Assembly (NCBI GenBank): GCA_965655095.1
Contig: OZ296649.1
Span: 56,482,001 to 56,546,000 of the forward strand
Source of the DNA: Haplodiscus bocki
Taxonomy: Eukaryota
Direction of reading: 5' to 3'
DNA: 64,000 nt
In this document: positions 296 to 48,400 of the stretch, piece by piece
How positions within the stretch are numbered: position 1 is the first letter of the stretch
How the letters are laid out: each line of letters starts with the position of its first letter
Made by a program: the position numbers and the translations under genes
The notes under the pieces: generated by a model
Told to the model about the DNA's origin: nothing
Databases searched by the model: none
The model's input: the letters and a program-made list of their open reading frames with translations, nothing else

Positions 296-3200
296 GTGAG
301 TCACTTTGATCTTGAGATAATCTTGGAATGAGGTTTTTTTCATACGCTCAAACCTCTTTAAACGTTCATACTTTTTTGGTAGATTTCTGCAACTCAGGTA
401 CATTTCGAGAAATTGAAAACAGAATTGGAAGAGCTGCGAGACAAATACGAAAGTGCAAAATACCATGTTAGTTATTATTTTCTCCGCCATTATTTCATTC
501 TGGAATGAAAATCCACTCGCCGCGTGCGTGTTTTTAACGTGTACTTGCCAATTACACGAAACCAAAATCGTGGATTTTTTTGACTTCGTAAATTTTTTAC
601 CATCAGAAAGTAGCAAGTTTGCCGTAGAATGCGAATCAATTACTAACATTTCTTAAATACGCACGAAAATAGTTTTTTTTGGAAAAAAAGTTGGTTTTTA
701 GAAAAACTAGCTTTCTGGGCCGAGTGGCTCGCTTCGCTTCGCCACCTATCACTCAAGGCCACAAATTTCGCTAATTAGTAGTATCTTATTAGCCCGTTTT
801 AGTCCCGAGCTGGATAGAAAGTTGAATTCCAAAAAAATTGGTTCTGTTTGGATTTCGTTTCGGTTCAACCACTTTCTCGGAATCTGATTGGCTGTCAGCT
901 AAAATTTGGGTGTGACTGACAAAAAGGTGACGTAAAATCAAAAGTTGGGTAAAATCGGCACCCGGAACCGGCTTACTCGCTGCTCCTTTGCTATTCATAG
1001 CTTTGTTCAAAATTTGAGCCAAATTGGGCAAGAAATGGCAGAGGAGTTTGATAATACACACACACACACACACACAAAAATTTTTCGCATTTAGTAATAT
1101 GTATAGAAAAACAGATTTTTCTTTAAAAATCGTGAAAAGGTTGCAAATTTGCTGTAGAATGCTTATAAAATGGATTTAAAGTGTCTTTTTTTCCCAACTG
1201 AAATTCAAGATTTTTTGCAAAAAAAAACATAACATTTTTGAATTGGGAAAATTTGCAAATTGGCTGAAAAGAGAGTACTTTTCATTGAAAATCGCCTTTT
1301 TTTCTCAAACAGATCTTTAACACAGTTGGAGGGCGGAAAATATGCGGGTGATAGCCGGCCGTATTGTTTCTCTGCTTTTCTTTAAAATATTAAGTCAGGT
1401 TGTTTGTGGTAATAGTTCCAATTTAAGATGGGTAAATTCTGGTATACGGACAGTTTTAATTTTCCGAGGGACTCGTAGTCTCGTGCGGTTTTTTTTGCTG
1501 AAGTTCTGTTTTGTACCAAAATTTGAAAATGTCGAAATTTGAATTTTCTCAATTTTCGGCGAAGTGGCGAAAGGGAAATCTAAGAAGCATCTGTGAAAAG
1601 AAAAACAAATTTCAAAAACTTCTTCAATATTCTTTCAACTGATAATGGTATCTTGGGAATATTCCTTTACAACTGCAAATTGAGAATTTCGGAATCATAA
1701 ATCGGTTCTTTTTGAAACGGGTGGAACTGGGGGCGGATCAAACCCCAGGTAGCACATGAGAGGCGCTTGGATCGGTTAGAAATGGAATTTTGTAAAAAGA
1801 AATTTAGGGCCTATTTTGATTCATTTTCTCTGATTCTAGGGCCAGGCCATGATTCTATGATTTTATTGATGAGTAATAATACAGCATTTGCCCTCTCCTA
1901 GAAAAGGTTTCTTTTCTGAATTTTATTAGGGCGACACTTTGAGACTTGTGTGTAAAAATCTAGTAAGTTCATGGCATATCAGCATGGTTTTTCATGGCAA
2001 CATTAAATGGACCATTTTCAGTAAATAAATCTCATTGATCAAAATAGTTTTAGATGCAAAGTCAACCAAAAAAGCATTTTGAGTTCTTCATATATTCTAT
2101 CATGTTCATACGTCGAGTTTATAATTCTACGTTCACATGTGAGTGTACAGACAACACCACGTGTATTTTGATCAATTTAAGGTGCTTTTTAATTTTATCG
2201 TTAAAGAAACTCGTTCAGTTTCTTTTGTCAGTTAATGTAGTAATAAACAAGAGTTGATAATGTATGTGTGCGATCAGTAGAAGTTGCTTGATGAGCAAAT
2301 AACTACGAATGATGGTTCGATTGCACTTTTGGCACCATTCGGCGTCCAACTTAAAGTTTGACCCTTGAACGTTTTATAAAATGTTTTTGTTCTTCATTTT
2401 TACGAGCCGGACCAATTCAGTGCTTTATGGTGAATTTTGAACGTAGTTTAAAACACTTCTTTACGAGTGCTTAGTTACTGCTTCTTGCGGTTGGCGTATA
2501 GTTAACTTATCATTTTCTGAAACGCAGTCATACCGCACACTGTGATTTGTTACTTTTTAACTTATTGAAGCTGTCGTCGGAAAAACTTATCTAAACTATT
2601 GCTAATTTGGGCTGAAACTTGCATGTTTCAAAGGTGCAAGGTGTCCTGTCCGTTTTGGTTTTTAACCCGGGTGACCGCATATATTTTCAATTGGTGAATA
2701 TTATTATCCATGGATCGAAAGAACAGTCCGGCCCGAAAGGGTCTGCAGGGTTACGAGGCTTATCGCAGCCGCAGTGATATCAGCCCATTACGTGCAGGTA
2801 CTTCTACGCCTACCAGAAGCACAGCCATAAGTCCAACTAGAGTGAAAAGTCAAGTGTCATTCGACGTGCCATACAAAGCAAAGGTAAATGCCACATTAAT
2901 AAAAATTGAGTTAAAGAATAGGAAACACGCCATTTCCCCCAAAAAGTTAGCATTAAAATGTTTCTGATGGATTAAAATGCATGAGCCTTCGTCAAAATGA
3001 TTTGGATTTCCGATGCCTTCTTGCGCAAAGTACTCTTAAAGAACTTCTCAACTTTCCAAAGTTAATTAATTGTGGATGGTGACTCGTCTTGGTCGTCAAT
3101 TTCGAATAAATCTTAATGGTTCTTTATTTGAACTCAAGGTTGGACAATTTGTCTCACTGAAAACTCCTCGTTCGTGTAGAGGGAATAACGATTACGAAGC

Positions 3201-6200
3201 GCAGTTGCACAGCAATATTTCGCGTAAACATTTGCTTAACAGTCTGAACAAAAAGAAATAACTGGCAGGCATTGTTTTGAAAGTTTTCATTTGCGCTTTT
3301 CTAATAAAAATTCAGATACGAATAATTGCAGGCGGAGACACTTCGCGTTAAAAGAACACGAATTACATTACGCTGTTTGTATTGCTCATTTCCAAGCAAA
3401 AATAACCAAAAACATTTGGATCGCCTATGATACATTCTATTGCTTACAATTGGGTCCTCCTGCCTTGTTTATACAAAATTTAAGCTCATCGAAAACCGAG
3501 TCCAAAAGATATATGGTTTGGAGAATATCAAATCTTCATCGACTTTCCGAAATGTAATTTTTTTTCCTGTGAGTTCTAAGAGCATCCGATATAACAACGT
3601 GGAACGCCACAGACACACAAAATGCGAAGTCATTCTTTCGTATTGCTCAAACAAATATGAGGTTGATTGAAGTTTCCGGTGTCGAGACACGCCTGTCTGG
3701 AAGTTAGCAAATCCGTTTTAAGAGTACTCGACATTTTTTTCCAAAATAAACTCTTACTCAAAGGCACTTCGACAATCCATCGTTTTTTTAAGTCATTTTT
3801 TGGTGAGACAGAATCGCACTGATTTTTGAAAGCCACATGTCAGTTTTGAAAACCACAGACTTCTTAAAATTGTCCTATTTTAAATTATGTTCAAATAAAA
3901 CCAACAGAAGATACTATAACCCCCTGCCGGATTCGAAATGTTCCCCTTAGTATTGATCAAGCTGAACTAACTTAAAATAAACGTTGGGAATTACAAAAAA
4001 AACGTTACCAAGTTGGAAACCTGTCCTAAAATCAGCATTTTTTCACATCAAAAATTATATGAAAGCTTTTGTCGTCTCGAATACTTCACGAAGCTTGCTA
4101 TTTTGTCTTTTTGTACAGAGGAAACTTGGCTGCGCTATAAAAGGACTGGAAATCATATAAGGTTTTGAAGTCATCAAATCTGGGGTAAAATCTTGAGAAA
4201 TGCCGTTTTCCTATTTTTTCTCCAATGAACTTCCGATACTTACTGTAATGCCAAAGAAAACCAATTTGAGCTCAAACTATTCTTTGGGACAGCTATTCTT
4301 AACTTTGGTATGAAAAGGTATCAGTGACTTCTGAAGATTCAGGGAATTTTTTAGAATAAAAGTTTGGCGAAAAGTATTTTAAAACAGACTCTAATTTACG
4401 TAGAAGTGCAAATTCAATGAAAATTGTCGAGTGGACCAAAATTATTTGTGTATTTCCCAAATTATGTCTACTTTGAGTGACTTTTTTATCACCACTGTAA
4501 CAAATACCAGCATCAAAAGTTATTGTAAAATGGAATATAGAATAGAGAGTAAATTGGCGTGTACTATTCGAAAGCTCGAATGCATTTTGACTAGCTGTAC
4601 ATGTGGAAGGTGTGGGTTCACAATTATGAATGAATTAAAAATTCCTTGCGTTGAATTGAAATCAACCGATCAAATTACAGCACTTTAAGTTCATGCGCAT
4701 GGCCAAACCAGTCATAACAAGGCAAAAAATGGCACTCGGAGAGCGCAGATCCCGCGAAAGCCCTTGTTTCTTGATTGTGTTCAAATGAACAAAAACGCGA
4801 AATAAATGACTAGCAAAACTGTCTAGGGAGCAAAAAGGGGGAATATTAAACACGACGAACATTTCCATTGCTACAGTATTGTATAGTCAGCGGTTTTTTG
4901 CTGACATCAGCAGTTCATACTTGCAACAGGAAAATTCATGACACGTCAAAATCAGTAATCAGGATGTTCGCATTTTTTGTGATGTCAGAAATAATTATGC
5001 CTGAGCCATCAAACAACTTAGTCAGCACTTTTAGTCCGGCTTCAAAAAACTAGTAAAATGCCAGTACATGGATGTATGATAGGATGTAAGTTGTTTTGGG
5101 GTGTCAGGATATGTTACTCCTTAAAAAAAGCTTGCAGTTTTAGTCCTTAGGTGATGGCGACAGGTCCGAAATTATCAGGAATGTAAATAGTGTCCTAATG
5201 ATCTTCATAACATTTGTGTACAATGGCTGACTTGTGAGCGATGTCATGTATCCGGATTTTGTAATCATGCTTGCAGGCTTTCATAATTAATTAAATACAT
5301 AATGCAATACATAAAAGCACTCCCGCCAAAGTAGTCGTTTCCACGGACATTTCATATTGGATTAGTCTCCATGTCTGTACAAAGGAAAAAGCTGCCTTCT
5401 GGATCACCAAAGGCAATCACCTCCCGAAAACTACATTGATCCAGTATCACACTTTTGACATTGATTACCCGGTAAGTTAAGGAGGTGCATTTTCTCTCGT
5501 GATCTTTTGAATTAGCCGTGAATGGAAGCTTTTACGGCTGTGTTATGTTTAACCCCCGACATTGATCCGGATCTCAGATCAGGATTTCAATCCGGATCAC
5601 GCCCAACTTTGAACTCGTTCTTGCTGTGCTGATTGCTTCCCTACTCACCAAATTTCATCAAAATCCTACAAGTACTTTATGAGAAACATTGATCCGGATC
5701 TCAGATTTTCAAAATCCGACCTGTAGTTTATGAGCAACATTGATCCGGATCTCAGATCCGGATTTCAATCCGGATCACGCCCAACTTTGAACTCGGACTT
5801 CCTATGATCATTACCTCCCTACTCACCAAATTTCATCAAAATCCGACCAGTAGTTTATGAGAAATCCTGCTAACAAACAAACAAACAAACAAACACACGA
5901 AGGTGATTGCAATCTCCCGCTTTTCGCGGGATAATAATGCAATGAGACAATTACTGCGGACATCGAATGCTTAATACGTACGAGATAAATATCCCCGAAC
6001 GTAGCGGCAGTACACATACCCTCCGCAGAGCAGCCGATGTGGAAGTACTGAAAGCACCGGCTTCAATACTGATAAGTAGTCAATTCAACTAAATTATTTT
6101 TGGACTTCCGCAACCCAAATTTTTTTTCTGATTTGTGAATACCGGCCATTGAGAGAATTGAAAACAAGTATTGCTTCAATGTAGCCTCCATTGAGGTGTT

Positions 6201-9200: not shown

Positions 9201-9366
9201 GAAGCCCTCTCTCCACCTTTGGCTTCTACTTCGATTTCAGTGTCCGATGCGGTTTTACTGGGGTCCCTCTTTTCTTCAGTTTACGTGGCCGTACAACGAA
9301 TGTTTATTTCCTCTTTTCTGGGCTGGATTTACGCGACTTTCCGGATTTTTTTCATTTCGGAATCTT

Positions 9367-9457
<91 letters not shown>

Positions 9458-12400
9458 GTTTCTCCGTTTAGCCATCGCAGCATTTTCATTTCGGTAGTTG
9501 TCAACTTCTGTATGTCAATATTTTCGACTGCGAGACATTCACACTAATAGACTAGTGCTGGTTGAATGACATGTGTTCGGTCTTTTTGAGATTCATTCTG
9601 TAACCATTGATTTAATCTGAACTGAAAGTTGGAGCAGTTCGTATCAGTAACTTCAAGTCGTTCTCGTACAGCATGTCGTAGGATACCGCCTTCACTTTTT
9701 TCAGTAGTAACATCTGGAACGACCTTGAATAAACTCGGGCTTAGTGCTGAGTCGTCATGGAGGCCAACTTTCACATTGAAGAAATCTGTGACAACTTGTC
9801 TGGTTCTTACTTACGTCTCCTTGTACATGTCTTTTACAATGTGGATGTACGCTCCAGGGGCTCTTTTTTTACGCAAACACTACCAAACAAGATTTTGGGG
9901 CACAGTGTTGTGTGATTTTTCCAGATCTTCGAAAAAAGCATGTTATTCGTTGTTTTCTTCTGTGGGTTCTCCATTAGTAACCGGTTGTTAAAAATGGCAT
10001 CCGTTGTTACTCTGCTTTTCTTCTCATAAATAACAGCTGGGTCACGCCAATGATGATAATTTTTCGCAGTCGATCCTCAATTATACATTCGTATAGTTTG
10101 AAATAATGACTCGGCAGTTTGTTTCTTCTATAAGTTGCACAGTTCATATGGTCACCTTTATGTTTTTATCGTGGAGTCATGACTGATCGTCTCTAATCTT
10201 GAGGAACGCATTTTTCGAACATCATACGATTCAATAGTTGGGTGGGAGCTTGCAGTCCGGAACAGCCAAAAACGTTTCAATGGGTAAAATATCTGGTCCT
10301 GTACTTTACCACGAGACGTTTTCGAAACTATGGGCTCACCTGTTTGTGATGCCCCCATTTTGGACCAAGACTAGTTCGCGGTGCAGCTGGCTCCTTATGT
10401 GTTCTATCGGTGTTGCGAAGCTCTGAGTAGCATTCTAGTCATCGTCTTTTAGACTTTCAGTGGGTTGTCCATGACTTCCCGCTCGTGTCCTTAATCCAGA
10501 GACCGTCATGTCCATTTTGTTCGCTTGGTCTCTGTTCTTCGCAATACGGAAACTGTTTTGGAGCCTTCTACCGTTTTCCATATCAAGTTTCTTGGCATCC
10601 ACCTACGCCCGCTTTGCTTCTGCTTTATCTTGATTTTGTTTCCCATGAGGCTGATGGGATGCAGTTTTCGGCCGATCGAGGAATGAATGTTTTTTTTTCC
10701 TCACGCTACTTCCACGTTTTCGTTCCACCCACAGTTTTTCTTGGTCAATGCTTCTTGTGTTTTCGCACGTTGCGTCTCCATCGTTTTTGATGATATCACG
10801 AGATGTTCTCCCTTTACTGTCTTCAGGCAACTGGTTCAGGACTCTCAGGTGGAACTCGACCATAGTGTCATGATCCAAAAGTTTCCACCATCGAACCTCG
10901 CTTCCGCTCGCCTTCTAACAGGGCGTCAGAGCTTCGGCCAAAGATAAATGATGGTGGGCAATTTTGGTTGACGGGGGTTCTTCAGGAAGGCCCTTGCAGT
11001 TCTTTTATTTACTTTGAATGTTTTTTGAGACCATGATGTAGTCAATTAGTTTGCTCTTTTGTCCATTCTTGTAGATGAATAATTGTGACTGCGGCTAACT
11101 GAATATGGTATTTGCGATCGTCATTTCTGATACTTTCGCATTCTTCGGAAACTTCTTGATTATTCAGTCGGCCAGAACCATGTCTGAGGAGCGATTTGAA
11201 TCTACTGCTGTCTGTTCCCACGTCACCATTGAAATCGCTGGCGGTGAGCAGGTTGCCAGTCACCTTCTTCGTTACTTTCTCTATGATGACTCGTCCTTGC
11301 AGTCATCATCGAGTCCAACTTGGGGCGCGTAGCATGACATTATTGTCAATTGTCCTCTGAAGAACTTAATCTAGACAGGTAGTCATTTCGTTTATTGAAT
11401 TGATGTTCACTATATGATCTTTCAACTATTTCGACACTATAATTCCGACACTATTTGTTTTTGTGTTGCTGCCAGCGTAGAAAAGTTTAAATCCGTTTCC
11501 AATGTTTTTCTTGGCGTTTCCTTTCCATCTGGTGTCTTGTAGACATGCTACACAAACACAGCGTCTAATGAGAGCTTCAACTATTTCTGCACTTCTCCCT
11601 GACATGCTGCCGACGTTCCACTTTCCACTGCGTAAGTTTGGTTTGGGCCTTAGATTATTTATCACGTTGCTCGGGTTGCAACGCAAAAGTAAGAATCAAC
11701 TTAATGCAAAGAATACTGCCTTTTGATTAGGCATGAGTAAATACCATCGATTACCATCTATGAAGAATCGATGGTAATCGATTTTATTTATGGGATATTG
11801 ATGGCTATCGTTTATTGTCAATGGGCAACTCGAGTAAGTTGTCATATAAATCACAAAGCATTAAGAACTCATTTACTGCTCGTTAATTGGTTTATATAGT
11901 GTTTCAGGAATAACTTTAACGACCTTTGAAAATTTATTTTAGATAAAGTTGATGCTGTTTGAAGCTCAGTTGATAATTTATTCATATTACATCAATCATT
12001 CCCTTTTCAGTTAATTGAGCTTCCTAACAGTTAAATAGTAATTACTCATGACGTAATCATTTCAGCTGGCCAACAGAGAAGAGTCTCTGGCTGCTCTGGA
12101 CTCTAGTCACAAAGAGTACATGGAAGAGATCACCAGACGGGAGAGGAGTATCCAGAACCTGGAACTGCAACTTCTCTCAGCTCAAGAAGAATCCAGAAGA
12201 CTACAAGATGATGTTAGTAATTTAACTACACGTATTGTTACTATGATAAAAATGCAAAGAACACCGGGAAGTATGGGAAGTTCTCGCGAAAATATTCAAA
12301 TTGTTATTTATAAATTTTTATGAAATCGAAACCTTGGAATCTTTTGAAATCTATTGAACCGAGTTTTTCGACATTTTTCAATAGTTTCCCTTTCGAATTT

Positions 12401-33400: not shown

Positions 33401-36400
33401 CAAAAATATTGAGTCTAGAAAAGGACCTCAGCTCTGCTCAACAATCAATCAAACAATACAGAGATGATATCAAAATGCAGAACGAGGCGCTAGAAAGGGC
33501 TCAGGTTGAAATCAGCTCCACCAGAGACGAATGCCAACGCAAGGTTGAAGAAGTTAGTGGTCAAATAATTTAGAATTAATCAATCCGTTGAGTGAAGGTT
33601 ATGATTTTCTTTATACGTATTCAATTTTTCTGGGTTCTCTTGAACTTCCTCTTAGATATCTCGGTCTTTGAAAATGTAGCTCTGGTTTTTTTTTACCTGA
33701 GCCACCTTTACCTGAGGTAATCTCAAAATCGAGAATTTTGCCTGACTACTCAGGTAATGTTGAGTTGGCGTTTGAGTTACTTGAGAAGTACTCAGATGAA
33801 TTGAATGAGTTACCGCTAGTCGTGAATTTAAAAATATATATAACGTATTCTTGGCGCAAAATTATGAAGTTTTCTAACTCAATAGCAGCTCCAAATGCGT
33901 GTTTTGAGTAATTTTTTGGACGACGCTAGATTTTAATCTGACATTCATCAAAAGGAAAGATAAATTGACCGAATGTTGATCGGAAAATGAGCATGTGACA
34001 GAAAAGCTTATTTATTTCAAAGCATTTTATAACATCATTGCATCATTTCAGAACATCATTGCGAGTAATTTTTAAATTGGAATTCATCTCTAGCAATAAG
34101 CAGACAAAATTTCTAATTTGCCTTCCCTGTGAGCTAAATCGGAGAAATAGCACCATGTACGGTGCAACAGAGAAGTCTGCAAACAATGAACTTCATCAAA
34201 ACCAACTTAAAAACTTGCACAAAAAACTTTTTTTTTAAAAAAAACGTCATTTCCTGAAGCACTCTGGTGAATTCACTTGAAAAACTCAGGTAATATTAAA
34301 TGAAAAGCCCAGGTGAAAGTACCTGAGAATTTCATGTAAATTTACCCGATTCCTAATGTGGTTATCTCCGAGGATCCTGAGATAATTCTCAGTTAATTTT
34401 GACCATCCTCAGCCCCCTTTACCTGAGTGTCTCAGATAAAATTACATGCGTTCTCATGTAATATGCTTGAGCAGAATTTTCAGTATTGACACTTGTAAAG
34501 TTTTGATAGTTGAATGTGAATTTGAATCCTATATCGTATGATGTTTCGACACCTGGTTGCTAATAGTCATAAAATTGAAAAAATGAAAAAAGCTAAGTTA
34601 AGTGCTGGTATTGTCATTGAATATTTGTGAGCAATGAACTTTCAGGTGAATTCTCAAGAGAGACAAATTTGTGACCTTGAGAAACAGATAGCAACTCTGA
34701 CAGCCACGAATTCCCAACAAGATAACCGAATCACGCAACTCACTGAAGACTTGGAAAGAACCAGAAGCGACCTCAGATCAACTAAAATGAGGCAGGTCCA
34801 CATTTATTGTTGTGCACAATTTTGCTTTGTACGTTTTCGAGCAATAAAACAAAGTGAAAATCATTTTAAACTTTGTAGAATAATCTGGTGCCTCATTTGT
34901 GTATCAAAATAATCCATTTTATGCATTTTTATCACCATATTCTGCAAAGGAGGAATTTATTTATTTCAAATTTTTGCATCAAATTGTTGCCTCAACTTTT
35001 ACAATTTCCCTTCTGAAAAACGTTTGAGTGTATGGGGTTTGTTCACACATGATAGAAACGGCTTTTTGTGCAATTTTGGTGACTCTAAAAACAACCGTGA
35101 CAATGTTTTTTAAACTGAAGTCTTGAATTATCTCTTCTCTGAATTAGGTTCAATGAAACTGGACAAGAGTTGGCGCACTGTGAGGAGAAACTAGAGTTGA
35201 TCGAAAGAACTCTTAACTCAACTCAAGATGAACTCAGCTCGAAGAGTAACGATTTGAACAGAGAGAGAGGCATCAACCAGAAACTGAGTGTGGAGCTCAA
35301 GAATGCACGGGAACAAGTTGCCACCTACGAACAAGAATTGTCTGATGCCAGAAGCGCCATTGGCCGGTAGAATTTTTTGCTTGCTTGATTTTCTTGGTTT
35401 TGAATCCTAGCACCCGTTTTTATTACTCGCCGTTTTCAACAAGAGCCCGACTATTACAATGAGTTTTGATTTTTAAACGACGATGTGTTCGAGAGACATC
35501 AAAATTTATAGAGTAATCATCAACTTTAGGACCAGAGTTACAGGCCAGGAATGCGAGAATGTTTATATGTACGAAAAAATTTCGGACCTTGCGTCTGAAA
35601 TTTTTTCATGATACGCTTTTTTACATATACTAAGTTTTTTCAAAGGCATATGCCAAAAATTTCTGAACTAAGGGTTTCCTCCGGCAGCAAATTTTGTACC
35701 AAAAAATCCCTCTGCCAATATTTCATTTTTTGGACAAAATTTTCGACAAATTTCAACAATTCCGACAAATCTTTTCATCAAAAAAAATGTGATTTTACCA
35801 TTTTTTTTGCCGAAAAAGTACGATTTTTGAAAAACAAAGGACTCACATGGATTTTTTGAGCCTTACGGGCGGCGCCGACTGTGGCCATTCTTGACTTGTT
35901 TGTTTTTGCATTATCTGAGTAATTCGTATTGTTTTTAGACGACTAGCTGTGTAAGTTGGAGATGAATTGTATGAGTTTTCTTCGCTCAATCATCAGAAAT
36001 TGAGTCATTGCCCTTGTTTTTTGTTTTTTACTCGGAACGCTCTTCATGTCAAGGATGTCATCAAACCATTACATCACAGAGCAGATGTAAAAAACCATTG
36101 TCCTTCAAATTCGTAACTTCAAAGTTGAAAATTGTTAACCATACTTTTCAAAAGCTAGAAATATCTGCTCAGAACTCGTTTTTGAACATTTAGAAATTGA
36201 AAATCTGTGGCTCGAAACCAACTGGTTGGGTGGAAAAAAAACATGATCAGTTTGTTCAGAAAAATTTTTTCATAAATAAATTTGAGAAACATCGCCTAAT
36301 TTCATGTGCAAACAACTATGTTTAATTCACGTTGCACGATGTTTTTGCAAACATAATAAAATCATGCACATTTTCAGAATCATTGAAAACGACAGCTTAG

Positions 36401-39400
36401 TTCCAAGGTTGGCATGAATGTAAAAAGTTATGAATCAATTTCTTCGAATCAGCGTTTCAAGTTCCTATGCATAGACCAGTGGAAGATTTTCTGATAGCTT
36501 AAACACTTCTTCATGTTGACTGTTTTCGATTCATTGTCTGGAAGTCTAGAAGTAGTATTACTTCTCTGAAAGTTTTTTTTTTCCTTTTCTATAGTCTCGG
36601 CTCATTGCTAGAAGCCTTTAGCCACAGCAGCGAGTCTGTCCATGAAGAGGTAGCCCCCGAGGACACATCGCTTCGAGAAAATCAACTGTAAGAAAAGCAT
36701 ATCAGCTGATGTCAATCAGTCAGCTTCAGTGCATGAGTCACTCATATGAGTTTCATTCAAAATATATTAAGAATATAAAGCATTTTACATTCGAAGGGAT
36801 CGACAAATAACAATAAATACATTTCATTTTAAATCATTGCAGAATTTTGTACGTTCGCTAAGGGAGTTTTCCATACCATTCCGTTTTAGTTTTTGAACGG
36901 TTGCAAAGCATTTCAAGATAGTCTTATTCCCTTCATGTTCATAAATATTACCCGGGTGGGAACAAAATGGCTACCATACCATGATTATGCATTGATGAGG
37001 GCATAGTGACCATGCTTCTTGCCATGATTCATGGAATGATCGCGGTATCTTGCATGACGACCCTGTTGTTATTACTCGATGTTTCATGACAAGCATGTCA
37101 TGAAATAGGCGTAATTATGTCATGGTGAGTATGAAACATTGTACTCATGCAGTGACATAGCATGATCGGCATATATGACCATTGCTATCACCCCGGTAGT
37201 TTGAAATCGAAATTTTGGCAAACCTGTGGATATGTTTTTCAATACTAAATGAGTTTTCACCATCGGGGCTAATCTTGCCAGACCATGGCATTCATGTTTT
37301 TATTTCTACTCACATGAGTTACATATTATTACATATGTAATACATGATGCATCTTATGTAAGTAGTTTAGAAGCCACGTTTCATTGAACATCGACCATCT
37401 CCCTCCATATTTCGTAGCTCATAGCATTTAGTGCCTTCTTTGGCACCTAGTGCATGTAAATGTTTGTCCTAAAACTAATTGATTTTTTTTCTCCAAGACT
37501 GCGAGAAGAGGTGGCTATTGACAAACAGAAGAACCAAGAAGCTGCTGCTGAGATCTACAGACAGAGACAACTTGGAAACAAACTCGAGTCAGAACTCGCT
37601 GTCAGGGCCACCCAGGTAAAACATACATTTAGTCACTCTCTTAGAAACGATAGACTCCGTAACCCGGAGGAATCACAACTTTGAAAAAGTTTTATCCTGT
37701 CACCGAAAATAGTCCAGAGCTTAAAACTTGAAGGTATGTTGGAATATGCGTCGAGCGTGGCATCGAATGATTCGTCTTGATGATGTTGGAGAAAAACTCG
37801 CTATAATTTTTGTTTTTATTCATTCTTCACAATGAAGTGCAGTAAATGTGTATAAATGTTTGATGGTTCAAATTCCATGCGAGTTTTCTTTCTTTCAAAA
37901 ACACGGGCGCCTTTTTTGAGCAATAAACTTGCTGTTTTCTTTTTTTTTCTTCGCAAAAGCTGGCGTGATTAACCGACTGAGCGAGGCTGAGCTCTAAAGT
38001 GAAGCTAAAATTTCCTATTTATTGTTTAATTTTCTTCGTTCGTATCTACTTTCTCCCGCTTTCCCAAGCTAGAACAAACGCCACTATTTACTCTTACATT
38101 TTAAGTACTTGATTCAAATTTCAAAAATTCTCAAATTCATCAATTTAATTCACATTTTATTTTCCAATTTTTCAAAATGTTGACTATTCATCGCGTCACA
38201 AATTTGTCACCAGAAGATCCAGAGCTGAAAGGTCGGTGCGTTGAAGAGTGAAATTCAAACGAAATTGTGATCTCAAAAATTGAACGGCTTCTGCAAAAGC
38301 TTGAAACCACGTCTACTGACCCTACACTTACCGAAATTTTAAGAGTTTCAGAATATTATCCAAAAAATCAACAAATGCAATCTTTGCATGAGGATAGAAA
38401 TTACTTATCAAAGAAAACGAATGAACAGGAGCGTTATTCAAGCAAAAATTGTCTGATTATCTCAAATTTACCCTTGGTTACGGGCATTTCTTACGGTGCA
38501 GACGTTATACCATTTCTTAAAGATGATTTAGGAGTAATAGTGAATGAATGGGACCTACAAGCTTGCTATCCCCTGTCCAAATTCTACAGTGAGCTGAACC
38601 CACCAGCTGTGATTGTCAAGTTTACATTTCAATTTTAAGGACAGAATTTGGGGTCCAAAATACATGCTCAAAGGTAAGACCAATCCAAAAAAATTTTCCC
38701 GATATTTTTACGAGAAAAACTTACGAAAGCAGACTCGCATTTTTTGAACTATGCTCGAGGCTTGGGATGCAAGACAACTGCTTACAACTCCGTGCCTCAA
38801 ATCCTGATAGAAAGTGAAAATTGTGTCCGAACCCACATTATTGTAGACACATGTCATGTTGATGAAAGATCTGCGTCTGGAAAAGCAATGAAATTCAGTT
38901 ACGAGCCTGAGAAAACAAGAAACGTGTTGAATACACCTGTGGTGGATGTGAAAAGAACAACAATCGATAAACGCAATTTTCATGAATCCCCAGACGCTGA
39001 GTTGAACTCTTTGAAAAAGAAATTTAAAGCAGCCCGTACTAATCCTCAAGAGATCCTGTAGGTTGCAAACGAGATACTCGATACGGACATGCATGACAGG
39101 CCACCTGGAGATTAAACTTTTTCAAATTTGGTAAACTCATCAACGTATAAATTGGTATTCGGATTGTACCAATTGTATGTTTGCAAATCAATTAAGATCT
39201 GATTTCGCAGCTGATAAGAACTTTTTTTAGGCTTGAATATCCAATGACTTCGTTGTCAATTTGACGAACTACAGATAGAAATTAAAAAAAATTAGTCAAT
39301 CACCGAAAGTAATAGGTTTAAGAGAAACATGGCTGACGAAGAACGATACAAAAAAGATACCAAAAAAGGAAATTAACCAATCCAAAGTATTGACTTAGAA

Positions 39401-42400
39401 AATTACCATCCGATTTCGTCAAAACAAAGAAAATCGAATAATATTGGAGGCGGATTTGGTTTTTTCATAGAAAAGTCACTAGAATACATTCCGCTCCACT
39501 TTGAAACTGAAATAGATTGCACGATAATCGAAGTAGATTTCGGAGAAAATTTATTGAGAAATTTTTGTGTTCTGTGTAGACCACGATCGCATAAATTGAA
39601 AGATTTTCTACCCATCTTCGAAGACGTGCCGCAATTCTTACGAATTCTCCAACACGACACAAAATCATTCGGTGACTTTACCATTGATGCAATCAAGGAT
39701 AGCAAACATAAGTCGGATTACGAGAATCTCATTCCCGCCTTTTGTTTCAGGCGCCAGATTTCAGAGCCCAGTAGAGTCACACCAACATCATCGACATGCT
39801 TGGACTATCTTTTAACAAGCTTTCCTGTCAAACACGAAACAATTAAAACAACCTTCAGTGATCAATACACAGTTGTTGGCGAAATACATATAGACATTAA
39901 AAATTCTCAGCAGAAACAGCAATTTTTTTTCAAAACTAGAAATCTGAAGAACATCAAAGGAGACAAAGCTGTCAGTTTTTTGTTCCTGCTCGGTCAGAAA
40001 TTGATGAAACTAGAAGAAAATTTAACAATTGATAACATTTCCAGAACCATTCTTGACTGTGTTCATCGATTCGCACCGGAGCGATTTACTTCTCATAAAA
40101 ATTCGCCGTCGAACCATTGGATTAACAATAGTAACAAAAATGCAAAAGCAAAAAGAGATATTCTGTTCCAGCAACAGGTTAACGATCCGAAACAGGAAAA
40201 CCGAGAGATTTATAAACGCCAAGGTAATCTAGTCACGTCTTTGATATCAAACAGACAGAGCGTGTGATTACCAAATTTTAGGCCTAAATCCTACCGCAAA
40301 GAACTGTATACAGAACTCTGAAGACACACCTAGCAAAAAATCGGGATAGTGTTCCGTCACATGATATTCAACCACTGAATAAAAAGTTCGCAACTATCGG
40401 ACCGAAACTATCAGAAGCTCTACACAAAGCTGAGTATAAATGTTTCACACCGACATTTGAAAAAACAATGGTTTTAACAAAAACAGATGAATATTATGAA
40501 AGTTCGCAAATTGATGAAAGAGTTGAAAAACAAAAAAATACTGGCCATGAGGGAATCAGAAAAGAAATTTGGAAATGTTGTTTACCAATAAAAGAAAAAA
40601 TTTAGTAAAAGCTTTTAATATCTGTTGGGGAGAACGGAAAGTTCCGTATGCATGAAAATTGCTCAAGTTATTCCACTTTTCAGGAAAAGAGATTGCAAGA
40701 AAATAATCGTCTGATTAGCCTTCTAACTTCTGTGAGTAAGTTTTTCGAAAAATTGTTATATAAACGCATGGTACGTTTTTTCCAAAAGAACAAAACTGTT
40801 TTCACCAATGGAGTTTGGTTTTACATTTAAACGCTCATGCCCGCATTCGATTTCCACAAAAACAGAAAATATGAGAAGTCAACTTGATGATAAACTCAGT
40901 GGCCAAGCATGTTTCATTGATTTAAAAAAAGCTATCGACTCTATTGATCAAAATGTTTTGCTTCAGAATCTTTGCTTATGGTTTGCGAGTACCAATTTTT
41001 GATTTAATGGATGATTATTTGAATGATAGAATGCAATACGTCGACGTCGTTTGGGATAAAAAAAAGATCAACATGGTCGAAAATTACCACAGGCGTACCC
41101 AAATGGTCAGTCTTAGGACCTTTTTTTGTTTTTAATTTACATCAATGTTTTACCTGAGTATGCGAAAAATAACAATCAAACTGCAATATTCGCTGATGGC
41201 ACATTTTTGGTGATAGCTGGCAAACGCAAAGAATGTCAAGTACAAGAGGACATAGATAAATTGGTGGTTTGGTTCACATCAAATAGATTGACTCTGAATG
41301 CTTCAAAATGCGAAGTATTGAATTTTGGGCTATGAGGACAACAATGTGTCGCGCTAATGAACCAAAATTTACCCTAAAAAGCTTCGTGTGAGTATTTGGG
41401 ACTTCATATTCATGGTAAATTGACATTCGATCATATCGACTACGTAGTCAAAAAATTGAATCGATTCAGTGGCTTGGTGTAAAAAGTGAGATATCCTTGT
41501 CCAGCAAAATGTGTACTCCTGTTTTTTAATTCATGTGCGGAATCAATGATTAGGTATGGAATACTAATTTACGGCAGTGCAGCCGAAACCAACTTAGAAA
41601 AAATTGAAAATGCAGAACGATGAAGCTAGTGAGCATTTTTTTTCCAAAAAAGGTTGATAGTCTCAAAGAAACAATTGAGAAACACAAAGTTCTCACTGTT
41701 TTCGAACTGTATGTATCAGAAGTTTTCAGTGAGCTTGTACAATACCTGAAACACGAGTCCCCGCCTGATTTACTAATGGAAGTTGATAACCGATGCACAT
41801 ATGCTACTCGTTGACCAGAAAAAAGGACTGCTGCCTCTTGAATTTAGCCGAACTAAAATAAAGTCAACATGTATTGAAAATATCCTCCGAAAAGCTACAA
41901 CTTCATGAAAGAATTCGATCGAATACCCGAAAACTTGGATGACTTATCAAAATAACAAGTAAAAAATTGTTTCAAAAAGTTATCTGACGCCTTAGTTGGT
42001 GGGACGACGCTAGCAAGGTTTTCCATCCGGAATAAATATGCCAAATAACTCCTTCATACCAATACATCTTCAATAGGGGCCATAACTTTTTTCTTTAAAT
42101 TTGTTTTCATTAGGCCTTTCCCGAGTTCTATTTAGTTATCAGCTTAGGTTTGTTAATTGATTCTCCCAGGACAGAGGCTCGAAGAGGTGCAAAACCTCAT
42201 GCTCTGTCCTTATTGAATACATTTAAACGGAAGTTTTTAGATATCTATATGTTATTGTACCAATATTGTATTCAAATAAATAAACTTTCCTTTCCTGTCA
42301 ATTCACAAAGCGTCGAAAAATCGGAAACTTATCAAAGCGGCAAAAGTTCACCAATGGACTATCGAACGCGAATTTTTTTGACCCTTTGAATAGTGTGCTG

Positions 42401-45400
42401 TTTTTCGACGTGATTGGAATTTTTTGCTAAATTCGCACCATCCCAAGTTTTTTTCATCATTCTAAGTTATAAGCGCTTTATGTATAACTAGCATCCTTGA
42501 AAACTGTGTTTTATTTTCGGGGAATGTCCATATTTTTTTCAGAATGCGAATCTGGGCGAGAAGATAGCAACTTTGGAGGACGGCGTGAAGGCGTTGCAAG
42601 AAGAGTTGAATCGAGAGAGAAACAAATTCCAACAATGCAACAACGACTTGCACGAAGTTCGACACTCTTGCTCAAACTTGGAACGAGATTACATGCAATG
42701 CGACAAAAATCTCAAAGAAACACAAAACCAGGTTACTTTACATGAATTGCAGAACAATCCTTAACATTTCCCCTTTTCCACGGTAATATTTTGTTCGTAA
42801 TTAATTGTAAGAAAAGAAAGTGATCTAAAAATGTACTAGTATAAAAATTCTTTTGATATTGGCTGTGTCCTTTATAACGCAGTTATTTGATTCACGTTAA
42901 AAGCAGTTTTTGCATCATAGATTTAATAAGAGAAAATTCAACCCGTATTGAAAAAAACTAGAACGAGTTTTTCAGTGATTTCTGTTTTGTAGTTGATGAA
43001 GGCGGAGAACACGATAGCGCATCTGAAAGAAGAGTTAATTGATAGTCACAACAAAGCCAGTGTACTTAAAGAGAGTCTCACTGATGCCCAAGGTCAAATA
43101 AAGACTGCTCATGCCGGTCTCGATGCTGCTGACAGAGACAAGAGAAAACACATCGAAGACGTTAGTTAGCCTACTATCTGATTTCCATTGTCAGACAAAA
43201 CGGAGGGATACACGATGTTTTCCAAATTTAGTAAAATCACAACTAATTCAAACTCAGCGTCGCCGAAAGCCAAAAAAATTATTATGTTCGCAAAATTTTC
43301 GAGATATTGACAATACTTCTAAGCATCTAAGAGTTATCTTTACTTCTATCCTTCTAATTCATGAGTATCGGATGTTGTTTTATGTTTTTTTGGGGGGATT
43401 CCCACAGCGTCGAAATTCCAAACAGATGAAAATAAATAACTGATCTCAAACAGCCGAATTTTTTTCGTAGCCAATAGGATTTGCGAGATTTTAAGATGCG
43501 CGTGCGATATTTAAAATCCGCCAATTAAATTACACGATGATTTTGATGTCATCTCGAAATCCAATCACGATTTAAAGAAAAATGAAATTTAATAATTTAA
43601 TACACTTTGGAATTTACCAAAAACTAGTGTTTCCGAAACAGATAACGCAGCTCGGATGATTTTTTTTCACGCTTTCACGCCTGTGTGACGAGAAATTTAA
43701 CCCTCCCCCTACACAGAATCTTACTCATCTCTGATAGGCCAAAATTCACACTCGCGCGTGACTTAAAACATTACACCGCTTAATATTTCAAATATCCATC
43801 AATGGGGGGGGGAATTGAGGGTTAAATCAGTTGAGGGTGGGGTGGGGTGGGGGATTAAATCAGTTGGAGGGGTAATGAACAGAGAAGATCCAATATTTTG
43901 AATATTAGGTGCAAATTTTACAATCCGTGGACCGGAGACCTCAAAATAATAACTGATATTCTTGTAGTTAGATTTTTTTTTCTGTATTGTCAGTAATTTA
44001 TTTTCGGCTTTGTGAAATGAGTTTCCGAATTTCGGCTGTATGGAAAGTCACCGTTTTTTCAGTCAATTTCTTAAAGTTCTCTCATTTCATGTTTTCCTTT
44101 GTCAATTGACTGCAAGCAAAGGTAACTTAAGTTACATGTACTTTTGCTTATACGCAAGTTTGTACAGTAGTGATTTTAATTAATGCGACTAAGCAATTTT
44201 GATACGCTTTACAAAATCCTAAGTGGAGAAATAAATAATAGATCAGAGTAAACAAAGCTCATTAAAAGGGCTACCACATGGTTATTTCGGTGGATTCCCA
44301 AATGACATAAGACCAGTAAACATAAAATTGAAAAGAGTCTCACTAAACATAAAAATTAAAACTCGTACTGACAAAATGTTCTAAATGGCTAAAATGTACA
44401 TGCGTACAATCCGTTAACTTTGTTATAATATATAGTCAGCGGATGTTTTTACGAACAAAAAATTGTTACTAATAGGGTTAAGTAAGAATCTCCGAGCATA
44501 GCAAGGGCACATATAACAGCCGCCAAGCGGTCGGAACGGGAAAGGCTTCTGGTATTGCAAATCCCTTTCAGGCTGTTATTAGCACAATCGTACTCATTAT
44601 GTATAATACTTATTGACAATTTTATGTTTAGTGAGACTACTTCCAAATTTATGTTTAGTGGTCTTATGTCATTTGGTACTTAATCGTTATTTCATTTGCC
44701 AAAAGAAGTACTTCAAAGAGGTAGAAAATTGCGTCCCAAAGTTGAGTAAAAAAACTATGCAAGCATTGCGAATAACGACTAATTTTGGCAGTTTTCGTAA
44801 AAATCTTGACAATGACGCAGCATAGCACGAAACAAATTACAGAATTTGTTAGTTTTGGTTATTCCCCAGAGCTTCTATCTTGAACACTTTTTTCACAACT
44901 TTGAATTTTCAGAAGAAATTGCAAAATGTAAAAGTATAATTTTGACATCCTATTTTAATACATTGATTTTCAAATTTAGTAGATTCAAAATGAATTTTGG
45001 AGTAGTTTTCAAAAACTTTTCCGCAGACAGATGATATCAGCTGTCGCAGAAACATCAAGGGCATCAATTGATGATGTAAAATTCCAATTAATAATTTTTT
45101 AAAGTTACCAAATTCTCAAAAGAATTTAAAGTTTGGCCAAAAACGCATTTTCTAGTTTTTGCTCCATTTGTTATAAATTTTTCAAGCAAACACCATTATA
45201 ATCTCCTAAAAATTCTAAGAATATTTTCTTTGTAGTACTTTTGTCCAAAATGATTATTCTCGAAGTTATTCGTGCTTAAAGTTGACTTATGCATTAAAGT
45301 TGTCGCATTGATTAAAATCACTACTGTGGTTCAAATTCTACATTTTACAGTCATCATCTGGAACTTGTTTTACAGGTGAACAAATACGAAGATTCCATAA

Positions 45401-48400
45401 CTGACCTCAAGACGAAGTTTGCCGGTAGTCAAGAGGAGGTGCGACAATTGACCAATCAGGTTTCAGATGACAAGCAATATATTCACGAGTTACAGATGGA
45501 GGTGAACACCTTAAAAGGAAACAACAAAGAAACGATGGCGCAGTTGAATGAAAGGTCTTCCCAAAATAGCGGATTGCGATCTGACGTCACGAGACTGACC
45601 CAGAACAACGAGAACCTCACCAACGAGGTACGAGCAACTGAAGAAAAATTGAGACTCGTGAAAAACGAACTGAAGCAAACGCAAGAAAACTACCGAGCCA
45701 CGCAAGACGAGTTGACGCTGTATGAGCACAAACTGGAAGAGACGAACAATAAGCTGTCGGCAGTTAATGAGAAGCATCGTCAAATTTTGATGGAGCTGGG
45801 TGCCCGAGACGACGAAATCAATGGCTTGAGAAATGAACTGACTGGCACTGATGAGAAATTGCGATACAAGCACGAAGAGGTAAATTTTCATTCATTGTCG
45901 CTAAATCAAGAAATTTTGAACTAGTTAATTATGCTTCGGAGTCAGTTGCGTTAGTTTATGTAGGGTATATGTCATATTCACGTTGATGTGTTTTGTTATC
46001 GGTCAATAAAATGAGCTTATCGCATAAAATTTTTAAATCACCTTCAGTGTCGGAAAGTTCTCTCAGGAGTATTGTCATTGTTTCTTCTAAAGTATCACCC
46101 TCTGACATGGAACTGATATGTACTGTTAGTTCATTCTCATGATTATACCCACAAACTTTCAAGATTTGCTGCTTTTTTGCAGTGTAACCGACTCTCCTCT
46201 GAGATGCAAGTGCTGGAGGGCAAGCTGGAGAACTCTCGAGACGAAATTAGTGCGATGAGAATGTCCCTGGATGAGGCTAGGTCAAACTCTGATCGTCTGC
46301 ACAGAGAGAGTGAACTTGTAGTGACCAATGTCAACAAATGGGTCCAAGAACAGAAGTGAGTTGTTAAATTAATCGTATTCTGATCCATAGTATTGAATTC
46401 AGTTTTTAACGGATCTTCAGTAACGTTATGCCGAGTTTTCTTCCATCATGATTGTTTGTGCTTCAGGCACTCTGAGATCTAAGACTAGGTTGGCAAGAGA
46501 ATAAACTGTCATTAAAAGAGATTGTATTTAATTGATGAAAATTGGTTGCATGATGAAGAATTGGTTCACCCATTTGAACGCTCGTAAATGTGGGGATTTA
46601 CGAGTTTGAGAAACTCACCGCCAAGCTGATTACTCGCTGTTAAGTTTCAAAAGTTCAATATCTAAAACGCATTACGATCCCTTTTCTGTGTTACTAAAAA
46701 CGTAGGTTGTGCCTTGAACCGATCTTAACTTTCAAGACTGTCATTTAAACCAAAAAAATTTGCCGAAAGTTTTCGCTTTGAAATGAAAAGAACGAATATG
46801 AAATAGAGTTCCAAGCAGAACCCTTAAAAGGTGCAAAAAGGATGAGATCCATAGCTTTAATCAATTGACCAGAAGCGCAAGCTCGCCCGGAACTGTGGAA
46901 ACGAAATTTTTTATGTATTGGTTGAAGATAAAAACGGCAAAGAGAACAATGCAATTCAAAGGTCGAAAACCCGAAAATCAATATTACGTGATCATTGAAA
47001 GAGGCCTCAACAATGATTGAGAATCCTTGAAGAAATTCAGATCATGATTGATACCTTCACTTGAGGAAAATTCAAAGCAAACTAATTAGCCCTATTTGGA
47101 CCACCGGAATTATAAAGACCCATACGTAGGAAATATTTATTCTGAAGCGAACATGCAGCGAAGCGAATTGAATGAAAAAACAAGATGATTGACTAGCATC
47201 GACATACTTTTCGCCCACTAACAAAGATTTTAGTCAACTTTTGCAAACAGTTAAAAACGAGAATACTGTTTTGAGTCTAGTTTTTCAAAGTTTTCACGAA
47301 CGTCAATTCCACCACTGATTTGTACAATTCCTGGCAATATCGATATACCGGGCTTCCGAAACAAAGTACTAAACCCTAGGTTTTTTTCTGAATCACCTTT
47401 TGAGAATTTGAAACTATCTTGTAAGATCTTGAGAGTGAAAATCCAGCTTGTATTTTTGGAGAAAATGAGTTTGACCATAGGGAAAACCCACTACAAGTTG
47501 CACTTCTGCCAATTTCGGGCCGAAAGACTATAAAATCACAGAACATATTTCGGAATTTGTTTATCGAGTAACCTTATACACAAATAAAAATGTCGACTGA
47601 GGCCTTGGTGGATGAAGTTCAGTCGTTTTGGAGAGATGAATTGAATCTCAAGAAAAACGACATGCATGTGCAAGTTTTGGTATTCTCAGCCAAACAAGTT
47701 TCCTGCTGAGATCAGAAAAACGTAACGTATTGCATCTCAAAACTGTTCAAAAATCAAAACTTGTCTTGATGAAAAAATGCAAACGGTAGCTCTGGAAATA
47801 ACATTGGTTCCATTACAAAGAAGCATCATACATAAAAATGAAATTTGCCAATTTGGGCCCATCACATTATTGAACAAAGGATGGAGTGAAAAAATAGGAA
47901 TCTTGAAGAATCTTTTTCATATACATAATTGATGATTGAGACCTTGACGGAAGAAATCTAGATTGTTGCTTTAGGGAGACCGAGTTTGAATATCAAGACA
48001 AATCAGACCAATGTTCAACTTTCAGCTAGTTTCGCCCATCAGGTTCCCATTTCAAGAAAATAAAAGAATAGTTCGGCAGTCAAGTAACTTTCTCGAGTAG
48101 AAAAGTGTCGATTGATACCCTAGTCGACGGAATGCAGCCAGTAGTTTCGGCGAACAAAAGGTTTGTTTCGCTTGGAAAATCGGAAACTTTTGCACTTTCT
48201 CGCTTTTTCGGTCCTTAAATTTCCGATGCAAGAAATTTTTCACTAAGATATTGTGATTTAACAATGCTCTACATCTGCAACATTCTTGAGTAAGACCTCG
48301 ATGTGAGAAGTTCAGCGGGTGGTTTTGAACAACTCTGATTTGTAAATCAAGATATTTCATATGGATATGCAATTATTGGCACTTTTCGCTCATCAAATTT

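Follow-up and report, generated by a model that had tools for sequence, protein, structure and literature searches.

The window analysed here is a 64,000-nucleotide (nt) stretch of the Haplodiscus bocki genome (assembly GCA_965655095.1, contig OZ296649.1, positions 56,482,001 to 56,546,000 of the forward strand; coordinates below count from its first letter). The window is AT-rich (~36% G+C), and its + strand carries numerous short open stretches in which E, K, Q and L abound. On this strand lies a gene, at least 59 kb long, that encodes ~1650 residues, nearly all of them in one two-stranded coiled-coil rod. Coiled coils repeat every seven residues (the heptad, positions a to g), and it is the relation between this repeat and the splitting of the gene into exons that concerns us: the phase-0 introns of the rod mostly fall between g and a, and the exons that they bound are mostly whole heptads, that is, exact multiples of 21 nt. 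The gene product is, as judged from sequence comparison, related to vertebrate PMFBP1 by its C-terminal block.

Our initial model was an ab initio chain of exons scored by coding score, splice signals and phase, which was then revised on the evidence of RNA and of two related genomes. The final model comprises 29 exons (383-59596, + strand), of which 16 are internal with phase 0 at both ends (phase 0-0: E1, E2, E5-E10, E13, E14, E20-E22 and E26-E28). In the list below the two phases are those at the start and end of the exon, a stutter is a four-residue insertion in the heptad register, numbered along the rod, and 7n+4 denotes a length of whole heptads plus four residues.

E1, 383-466 (+): candidate exon of the 29-exon gene, 84 nt, phase 0-0, starts at heptad position a; ab initio only (AG/GT sites, open frame).
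E2, 12066-12212 (+): 147 nt = 7 heptads, phase 0-0; RNA, and the same boundaries in a relative at 96% amino-acid identity.
E3, 19592-19812 (+): 221 nt, phase 0-2, stutter 1 near residue 122; RNA on both sides, same length with AG/GT in a relative.
E4, 20220-20388 (+): 169 nt, phase 2-0; E3+E4 = 390 nt = 7n+4 residues; RNA, same length in a relative.
E5, 20597-20680 (+): 84 nt = 4 heptads, phase 0-0; RNA, same length in a relative.
E6, 20807-20974 (+): 168 nt = 8 heptads, phase 0-0; RNA, and 168 nt in a relative at only 55% amino-acid identity.
E7, 21316-21495 (+): 180 nt = 7n+4 residues, phase 0-0, stutter 2 near residue 322; RNA, same length in a relative.
E8, 23635-23739 (+): 105 nt = 5 heptads, phase 0-0; RNA, same length in a relative at 100% amino-acid identity.
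E9, 24314-24460 (+): 147 nt = 7 heptads, phase 0-0, GC donor; RNA, and 147 nt with a GT donor in a relative.
E10, 24945-25094 (+): 150 nt, phase 0-0; RNA, same length in a relative.
E11, 25585-25732 (+): 148 nt, phase 0-1, stutter 3; 5' end by RNA, 148 nt with AG/GT in two relatives.
E12, 28572-28684 (+): 113 nt, phase 1-0; E10+E11+E12 = 411 nt = 7n+4 residues; same length with AG/GT in a relative.
E13, 29025-29255 (+): 231 nt = 11 heptads, phase 0-0; 231 nt with AG/GT in two relatives.
E14, 30838-31068 (+): 231 nt = 11 heptads, phase 0-0; 231 nt with AG/GT in two relatives.
E15, 32426-32745 (+): 320 nt, phase 0-2; both outer boundaries in the second relative.
E16, 33378-33552 (+): 175 nt, phase 2-0, stutter 4 near residue 841; E15+E16 = 495 nt = 7n+4 residues; 175 nt with AG/GT in the second relative.
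E17, 34646-34791 (+): 146 nt, phase 0-2, GC donor; 146 nt with GT donors in two relatives.
E18, 35148-35366 (+): 219 nt, phase 2-2; 219 nt with AG/GT in two relatives.
E19, 37498-37615 (+): 118 nt, phase 2-0; 118 nt with AG/GT in two relatives.
E20, 42543-42731 (+): 189 nt = 9 heptads, phase 0-0; 189 nt with AG/GT in a relative.
E21, 42993-43160 (+): 168 nt = 8 heptads, phase 0-0; 168 nt with AG/GT in a relative.
E22, 45376-45879 (+): 504 nt = 24 heptads, phase 0-0; outer boundaries both kept in a relative, as is the 504-nt total.
E23, 46183-46355 (+): 173 nt, phase 0-2, stutter 5, conserved C-terminal block; 173 nt in a relative.
E24, 54421-54645 (+): 225 nt, phase 2-2, conserved C-terminal block; shark pmfbp1 match.
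E25, 55866-55983 (+): 118 nt, phase 2-0; E23+E24+E25 = 516 nt = 7n+4 residues; in a relative the donor is kept and the acceptor differs.
E26, 56129-56230 (+): 102 nt, tail, phase 0-0; E26+E27 = 222 nt = 7n+4 residues; comparison with a relative.
E27, 56318-56437 (+): 120 nt, tail, phase 0-0; comparison with a relative.
E28, 59228-59314 (+): 87 nt, tail, phase 0-0; splice sites kept in a relative.
E29, 59483-59596 (+): last coding exon, with a TAG stop; acceptor kept in a relative.

Many of these boundaries have been read from RNA. The 504-nt exon E22 is present in four public sequencing runs, which we mapped on positions 19550-25549: three are genomic and the fourth, X3, is spliced. Its contig 17 (4149 nt) maps there with no mismatches and skips every predicted intron, giving nine junctions (the caret marks the splice point): 12212^19592, 19812^20220, 20388^20597, 20680^20807, 20974^21316, 21495^23635, 23739^24314, 24460^24945 and 25094^25585. 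The word depth of the contig, ~1212 in a small run of 82 million letters, suggests that the gene is probably strongly expressed in the X3 sample. The intron 24460^24945 is thereby confirmed as GC-AG, with the donor GAG^GCAAGT. The model holds two such introns, after E9 and E17 (positions 24461 and 34792), and the related genomes have GT at both; the ab initio chain missed E9 and mis-set E17 because of these GC donors. RNA joins 12212 directly to 19592, which rules out an exon at 12484-12528 that the ab initio chain had proposed; two further members of that chain, 36595-36687 and 40684-40731, have been discarded as not conserved, the latter also lying inside a retrotransposon fragment. The ab initio boundaries of E18, E28 and E29 were likewise replaced after the RNA and the relatives had been consulted.

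The two related genomes were found via open reading frames (ORFs) predicted on their contigs by a metagenome-style gene caller. In the closer relative, exon lengths are identical and AG/GT sites stand at homologous positions for E2-E14 and E17-E23; the second has the same lengths and AG/GT sites for E11, E13, E14 and E16-E19, as well as both outer boundaries of E15. Comparing exon by exon gives the same boundaries as comparing the joined window protein with the loci of the relatives. Wherever the closer relative covers E2-E23 there is no net insertion or deletion (indel), at an amino-acid identity of 55-100% per exon.

The gene's 5' end is less firmly placed. The X3 contig starts 147 nt before the 12212^19592 junction, that is, at the predicted first base of E2. 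Upstream of E1 lies a candidate phase 0-0 exon of 75 nt (221-295, +) with the strong donor CAG^GTGAGT, and the gene may start upstream of the window. Between E1 and E2, at 2710-2883 (+), is an open stretch that starts with ATG, encodes 58 residues with much S, T, P and R, and stops at a good phase-0 donor, AAG^GTAAAT. Spliced to E2, this stretch could serve as an alternative first coding exon, and the exact coincidence of the RNA unitig break with the first base of E2 would be in keeping with that.

Outside the tail (E26-E28) there are 13 phase 0-0 exons, and 11 of them measure an exact multiple of 21 nt: 84 (E1), 147 (E2), 84 (E5), 168 (E6), 105 (E8), 147 (E9), 231 (E13), 231 (E14), 189 (E20), 168 (E21) and 504 (E22). 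The first-pass annotation of this DNA, made from the letters alone, had described the pattern with a count of ten; the pattern is borne out and the count is not, RNA-confirmed E5 (20597-20680) having been missed. Among the phase 0-0 rod exons that have support the proportion is 10 of 12 (binomial p = 1.8e-7 at a chance of 1/7), and over the whole of E2-E25, whatever the phase, it is 10 of 24 (p = 6e-8 at a chance of 1/21). As also noted on first pass, E17, E18 and E19 add up to a whole number of heptads (146+219+118 = 483 = 23x21), and its figure of 21 phase-0 introns out of 28 is reproduced by our independent gene model. The nine RNA junctions leave unchanged the multiples that they bound.

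Where do the introns fall with respect to the heptad? We assigned the register by a seven-state Viterbi path over the joined exons, using hydrophobic periodicity alone with a penalty per break and no information on exons. The path gives a heptad rod of ~1545 residues with five breaks, each of them a stutter. Seventeen of the 28 introns, and thus 17 of the 21 in phase 0, lie exactly between g and a (p = 1.4e-11 at 1/7), a count that is the same at jump penalties of 3, 4 and 6; within the rod, the intron 3' of E10 is the one phase-0 intron off this lattice (a/b). The central inference of the first-pass annotation, that introns sit at one fixed heptad position, thus holds, as does its remark on the residues around them: at the 17 g/a junctions the exon ends in Q or E in 9 and starts with V or L in 12. 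The same periodicity emerges free of any parameter when hydrophobic residues are counted by index modulo 7 from the starts of the phase-0 blocks (147, 25, 26, 90, 45, 19 and 23, with peaks at 0 and 3).

The stutters are accommodated within blocks. Up to E27 there are 20 phase-0 blocks; their length in residues, modulo 7, is 0 in 12 and 4 in four, each of the latter containing one stutter, and the remaining four pair as 1+3 and 6+5, with each pair summing to 4 on the same count. A single 21-nt lattice laid over the whole gene had to be dropped, as the cumulative positions shift along it: the lattice is local, with each module starting at position a.

Comparison with the relatives separates introns on the lattice from those off it. 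In both relatives E15 is split after nt 159 by an extra intron (phase 0, heptad d/e), which suggests loss in the lineage of the window; the pieces measure 159+161 nt in the second relative, and in the first only the 159-nt piece was found. In the closer relative E22 consists of three exons of 142+188+174 nt (locus L001, 10001-10142, 10620-10807 and 13739-13912) with the total unchanged, and the two extra introns, one in phase 1 and one in phase 0, both fall at e/f, off the lattice. The intron between E24 and E25 stands 26 nt further upstream in a relative: the nine residues VMLEQMKAR end E24 in the window (54620-54645; next exon at 55866) and begin the next exon in the relative (positions about 23647 and 26681 of merged L005+L003), with the phase changing from 0 to 2, an apparent case of intron sliding. 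Finally, the 87-nt intron between E26 and E27 (56231-56317) is absent in a relative, where both exons are fused. None of the introns that vary between the relatives is at g/a, and every comparable g/a intron is conserved.

Exon starts share more than a register. They carry the motif [VL]xx[KRQ][ED][DEN]x[IL]xxL, in which the first d position is usually polar and L stands at +10 in 14 of 17 exons. Exon starts left out of the motif score higher for it than internal a-positions do, even with the first residue disregarded (leave-one-out p = 1.5e-4). The signal is confined to this position-specific motif, since overall BLOSUM similarity among the exon starts is not significant (z = 1.4).

A homologue in the oyster Ostrea edulis, the uncharacterised coiled-coil protein of LOC125667409 (XP_055998950.1), which we mapped exactly on locus L009, repeats the architecture. 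All 23 of its mapped coding exons are phase 0-0, 18 of the 23 are multiples of 21 nt (63, 84, 105, 147 and 168), and 19 of its 22 introns lie at g/a; the 21-nt and g/a counts are inflated, the duplicated exons among them not being independent events. These duplicates are tandem, near-identical exon pairs: (105+63) three times, followed by five pairs of the (84+168) type, of which one contains a 138-nt exon and the last ends in a terminal exon of 177 nt. The motif derived from the window ranks oyster exon starts above internal a-sites of the oyster protein (p = 0.013), and the last 28 residues of E9 resemble oyster exon 9 and have the same end point. The two genes thus have in common whole-heptad phase 0-0 exons (63, 84, 105, 147 and 168 nt in the oyster), g/a introns, the exon-start motif and one exon end. 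They differ in that recent near-identical tandem pairs are found in the oyster only, the oyster protein has 805 residues, and overall similarity is low, at 24-40% in two stretches; the oyster gene may be a paralogue.

The link to vertebrates comes from database searches by single exons and from a tblastn search with a shark protein. PMFBP1, polyamine-modulated factor 1-binding protein 1, is found in the sperm head-tail coupling apparatus (PMC11643634). A search of 1.84 billion representatives with the 504-nt exon gave few matches, the best named full-length one being pmfbp1 of a shark, Chiloscyllium punctatum. In a tblastn search with this shark protein (P0005), E23 has 54% identity to residues 1708-1759 of the shark protein and E24 has 47% to residues 1759-1820 (E about 1e-9 for both), in the same order. 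Of two transcript-derived proteins, P0003 matches E22, E23 and E24, and P0007 matches E22 and E24. A Pfam search of ten exons returned generic coiled-coil families only, all below threshold, and a word search with the 504-nt exon found no match in its length range. Vertebrate PMFBP1 and the window protein are both long coiled coils, but along the rod their identity is ~25%.

Searching with the shark C-terminal region and then listing cluster members yielded many predicted PMFBP1 isoforms. Between the two shark isoforms the difference consists of cassettes, one of exactly 28 and one of exactly 49 residues, the latter of which can be placed to start with V at position a. Across the predicted isoforms of 14 species, 27 of 40 distinct internal indels of at least 7 residues are multiples of 7 (7, 21, 28, 42, 49, 56 and 77 residues). 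The trend is plain, although a nominal p of 3e-14 overstates the case: the isoforms are computational, and some of the indels are orthologous or composite. No PMFBP1 paper in the literature that we searched describes heptad-sized exons.

On balance we favour an origin of the pattern by repeated tandem duplication of whole-heptad phase-0 exons, much as in collagen, and regard it as probable. The rod would be encoded by modules that run from position a to position g, each bounded by phase-0 introns. Symmetric 0-0 exons of whole heptads would have been multiplied in tandem by unequal crossing-over within introns, each copy inheriting both intron phase and place in the heptad, as the 54-bp exons of collagen inherit the Gly-X-Y frame. 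Similarity between the copies would later have faded while selection against register-breaking indels held the exon lengths constant; some lattice introns were probably lost, fusing blocks, and off-lattice introns would have been gained or lost lineage by lineage. Since such modules are both in frame and in register, the duplication, loss or skipping of one alters only the length of the rod and leaves the seam intact, and rod length would change in whole-heptad steps of ~1 nm each. The first-pass annotation had gone further, proposing that exons could be skipped or duplicated to tune the rod. The fixed heptad position on which it built this stands; duplication is seen in the oyster only, and isoform differences of heptad size in predicted vertebrate PMFBP1 only. 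The vertebrate isoform models suggest skipping; a rod length tuned by splicing is plausible, and Haplodiscus bocki may make use of it.

Other accounts of the pattern have to be set against duplication. It is very hard to credit that the 21-nt multiples arose by chance or by our picking splice sites that fit: many alternative AG and GT sites do lie around each exon, and E1 rests on ab initio prediction, but nine junctions are read directly from the spliced RNA contig, one or two other genomes share the lengths and splice sites of E2-E23, the exons with support give by themselves a p of about 1e-7, and the exactly mapped oyster gene has the same pattern. For E2-E23 the RNA junctions, the conserved boundaries and this p value lead us to reject it. 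Independent insertion of introns at proto-splice sites, which the first-pass annotation had offered as its alternative in the form (C/G)AG^G, would work if heptad codon use created (C/A)AG^G or AG^GT between g (E, Q or K) and a (V). V is indeed found at 6 of 18 exon starts as compared with 9% of internal a-positions, and phase-0 g/a accounts for 7 of the 17 AG^GT sites in the spliced coding sequence, although some of the seven may be the junctions themselves. However, phase-0 g/a holds just 10 of 66 AG^G sites (15%) and 13 of 186 MAG^R sites (7%), as against 17 of 26 rod introns (binomial p = 5e-8); most AG^G and MAG^R sites lie between polar positions (e/f, f/g). Moreover, among 20 phase-0 junctions AG precedes in 8 and G follows in 8, and the variable introns of the relatives, in which recent gain or loss is most likely, lie elsewhere than at g/a. 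With 7-15% of candidate sites in the right place, we consider such insertion improbable.

Selection for alternative splicing deserves more credence as the cause, though we still think it rather unlikely. Phase-0 introns at g/a would be kept because they allow whole-heptad cassettes to be skipped, giving discrete rod lengths, and introns elsewhere would be tolerated only around exons that are always included. The predicted vertebrate PMFBP1 isoforms, which differ mostly by whole heptads and by sizes that match the window exons of 84, 147, 168 and 231 nt, are consistent with it, and the RNA unitig break at E2 suggests more than one upstream context. Against this, those isoforms are computational models, and the X3 contig runs through E2-E11 without leaving out an exon, a weak objection given that contigs drop rare variants. 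Such selection also explains the upkeep of the pattern rather than its origin, and is compatible with an origin by duplication.

Duplication itself has several observations to contend with. The all-vs-all comparison suggested on first pass finds a small excess of similarity between blocks of the window gene (7 of 231 pairs at z > 3 against a heptad-preserving shuffle) and no clear duplicates; with similarity this weak, duplication is not demonstrable in the lineage of the window. Eleven introns are off the lattice, and the rule is thus not universal; the relatives carry further off-lattice introns, two of them in phase 0. The exon-start motif could reflect purine-rich splicing enhancers near exon edges instead of common descent. 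A general bias of coiled-coil genes is possible, our counts covering the window gene, its relatives, the oyster homologue and vertebrate PMFBP1. The oyster counts are inflated, as said, and so is the indel count of PMFBP1, whose vertebrate isoforms are computational and whose orthologous cassettes are not independent, some being composite.

The window contains several features besides the exons. Inside intron 19, broken ORFs of a non-LTR (long terminal repeat) retrotransposon extend over 39554-41335 (+), with one weak RVT_1 match (E = 1.9e-5); this insertion accounts for part of the length of the intron, 4.9 kb in the window and <0.5 kb in a relative. At 63146-63982 (-), where G+C is only 26%, ORFs weakly match organellar/viral type B DNA polymerase (PF03175, E = 1.8e-5) and may belong to an insert derived from a plasmid or to a Polinton/Maverick-like element. 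At about 9330-9440 the CT/GA dinucleotide is repeated over a long stretch, seen as (SL)n ORFs. Just upstream of E8, at about 23550-23600, is a high-copy repeat, where the genomic runs climb in summed contig depth from ~8-40 to 1200-4400 and many contigs are interrupted.

Agreement between exons and a structural repeat is a well-known feature of some genes. Fibrillar collagen genes are organised in 54-bp exons, the accepted origin of which is a primordial exon that was duplicated, with later fusions. The window gene resembles them in having exon lengths that are whole multiples of the structural repeat and phase 0-0 exons that start at the same position of the repeat. The repeat itself differs, being Gly-X-Y (9 nt) in collagen and the seven-residue heptad (21 nt) here, and the window gene further departs from collagen in its range of exon sizes (84-504 nt), its 7n+4 blocks with stutters, and the third of its introns that are off the lattice. 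In nebulin and in the PEVK region of titin, module-per-exon genes as well, cassette splicing, which experiments have demonstrated, sets the length of the filament or spring. They too have one structural module per symmetric exon and vary length via cassette exons, but they are not coiled coils, and their modules of 35 or about 28 residues are recognisable sequence repeats. The myosin heavy chain rod and intermediate filament genes are similar in encoding long heptad rods with stutters or skip residues in many exons; to our knowledge their exons are not sized in multiples of 21 nt, and their introns, though conserved, do not share a single heptad position. In the literature that we searched on heptads, exons, introns and PMFBP1 we found no description of heptad-phased exons; many subscription papers lie outside it, and an older report is possible. 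While repeat-matched exons as such are thus familiar from collagen and nebulin, their heptad version in coiled coils appears to be new.

Growth by exon duplication and length control by splicing have their classic evidence in genes with repeat-matched exons, and the coiled coil is the most common rod-forming fold. In the gene described here the match is exact, tracks the local register through five stutters and is conserved in two related genomes. Phase-0 introns at g/a are a simple marker with which to find other coiled-coil genes built alike. Tentatively, the PMFBP1-like family, from molluscs to vertebrates, might be a splice-programmable molecular ruler with an architecture kept by selection for that use. 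If so, cassettes of 3, 4, 7, 8 or 11 heptads starting from position a would let cells make rods of discrete lengths, in steps of ~3-11 nm and with the seam undisturbed, and the family would be the first coiled-coil counterpart of the 54-bp exons of collagen and the spliced modules of nebulin. This raises the question of whether exon choice sets the length of a coiled-coil rod in the sperm neck in steps of whole heptads. When exons of the PMFBP1-like family are skipped or deleted in frame, the coiled coil should be preserved, which bears on how exon-level variants of PMFBP1 in acephalic-sperm infertility are to be understood.

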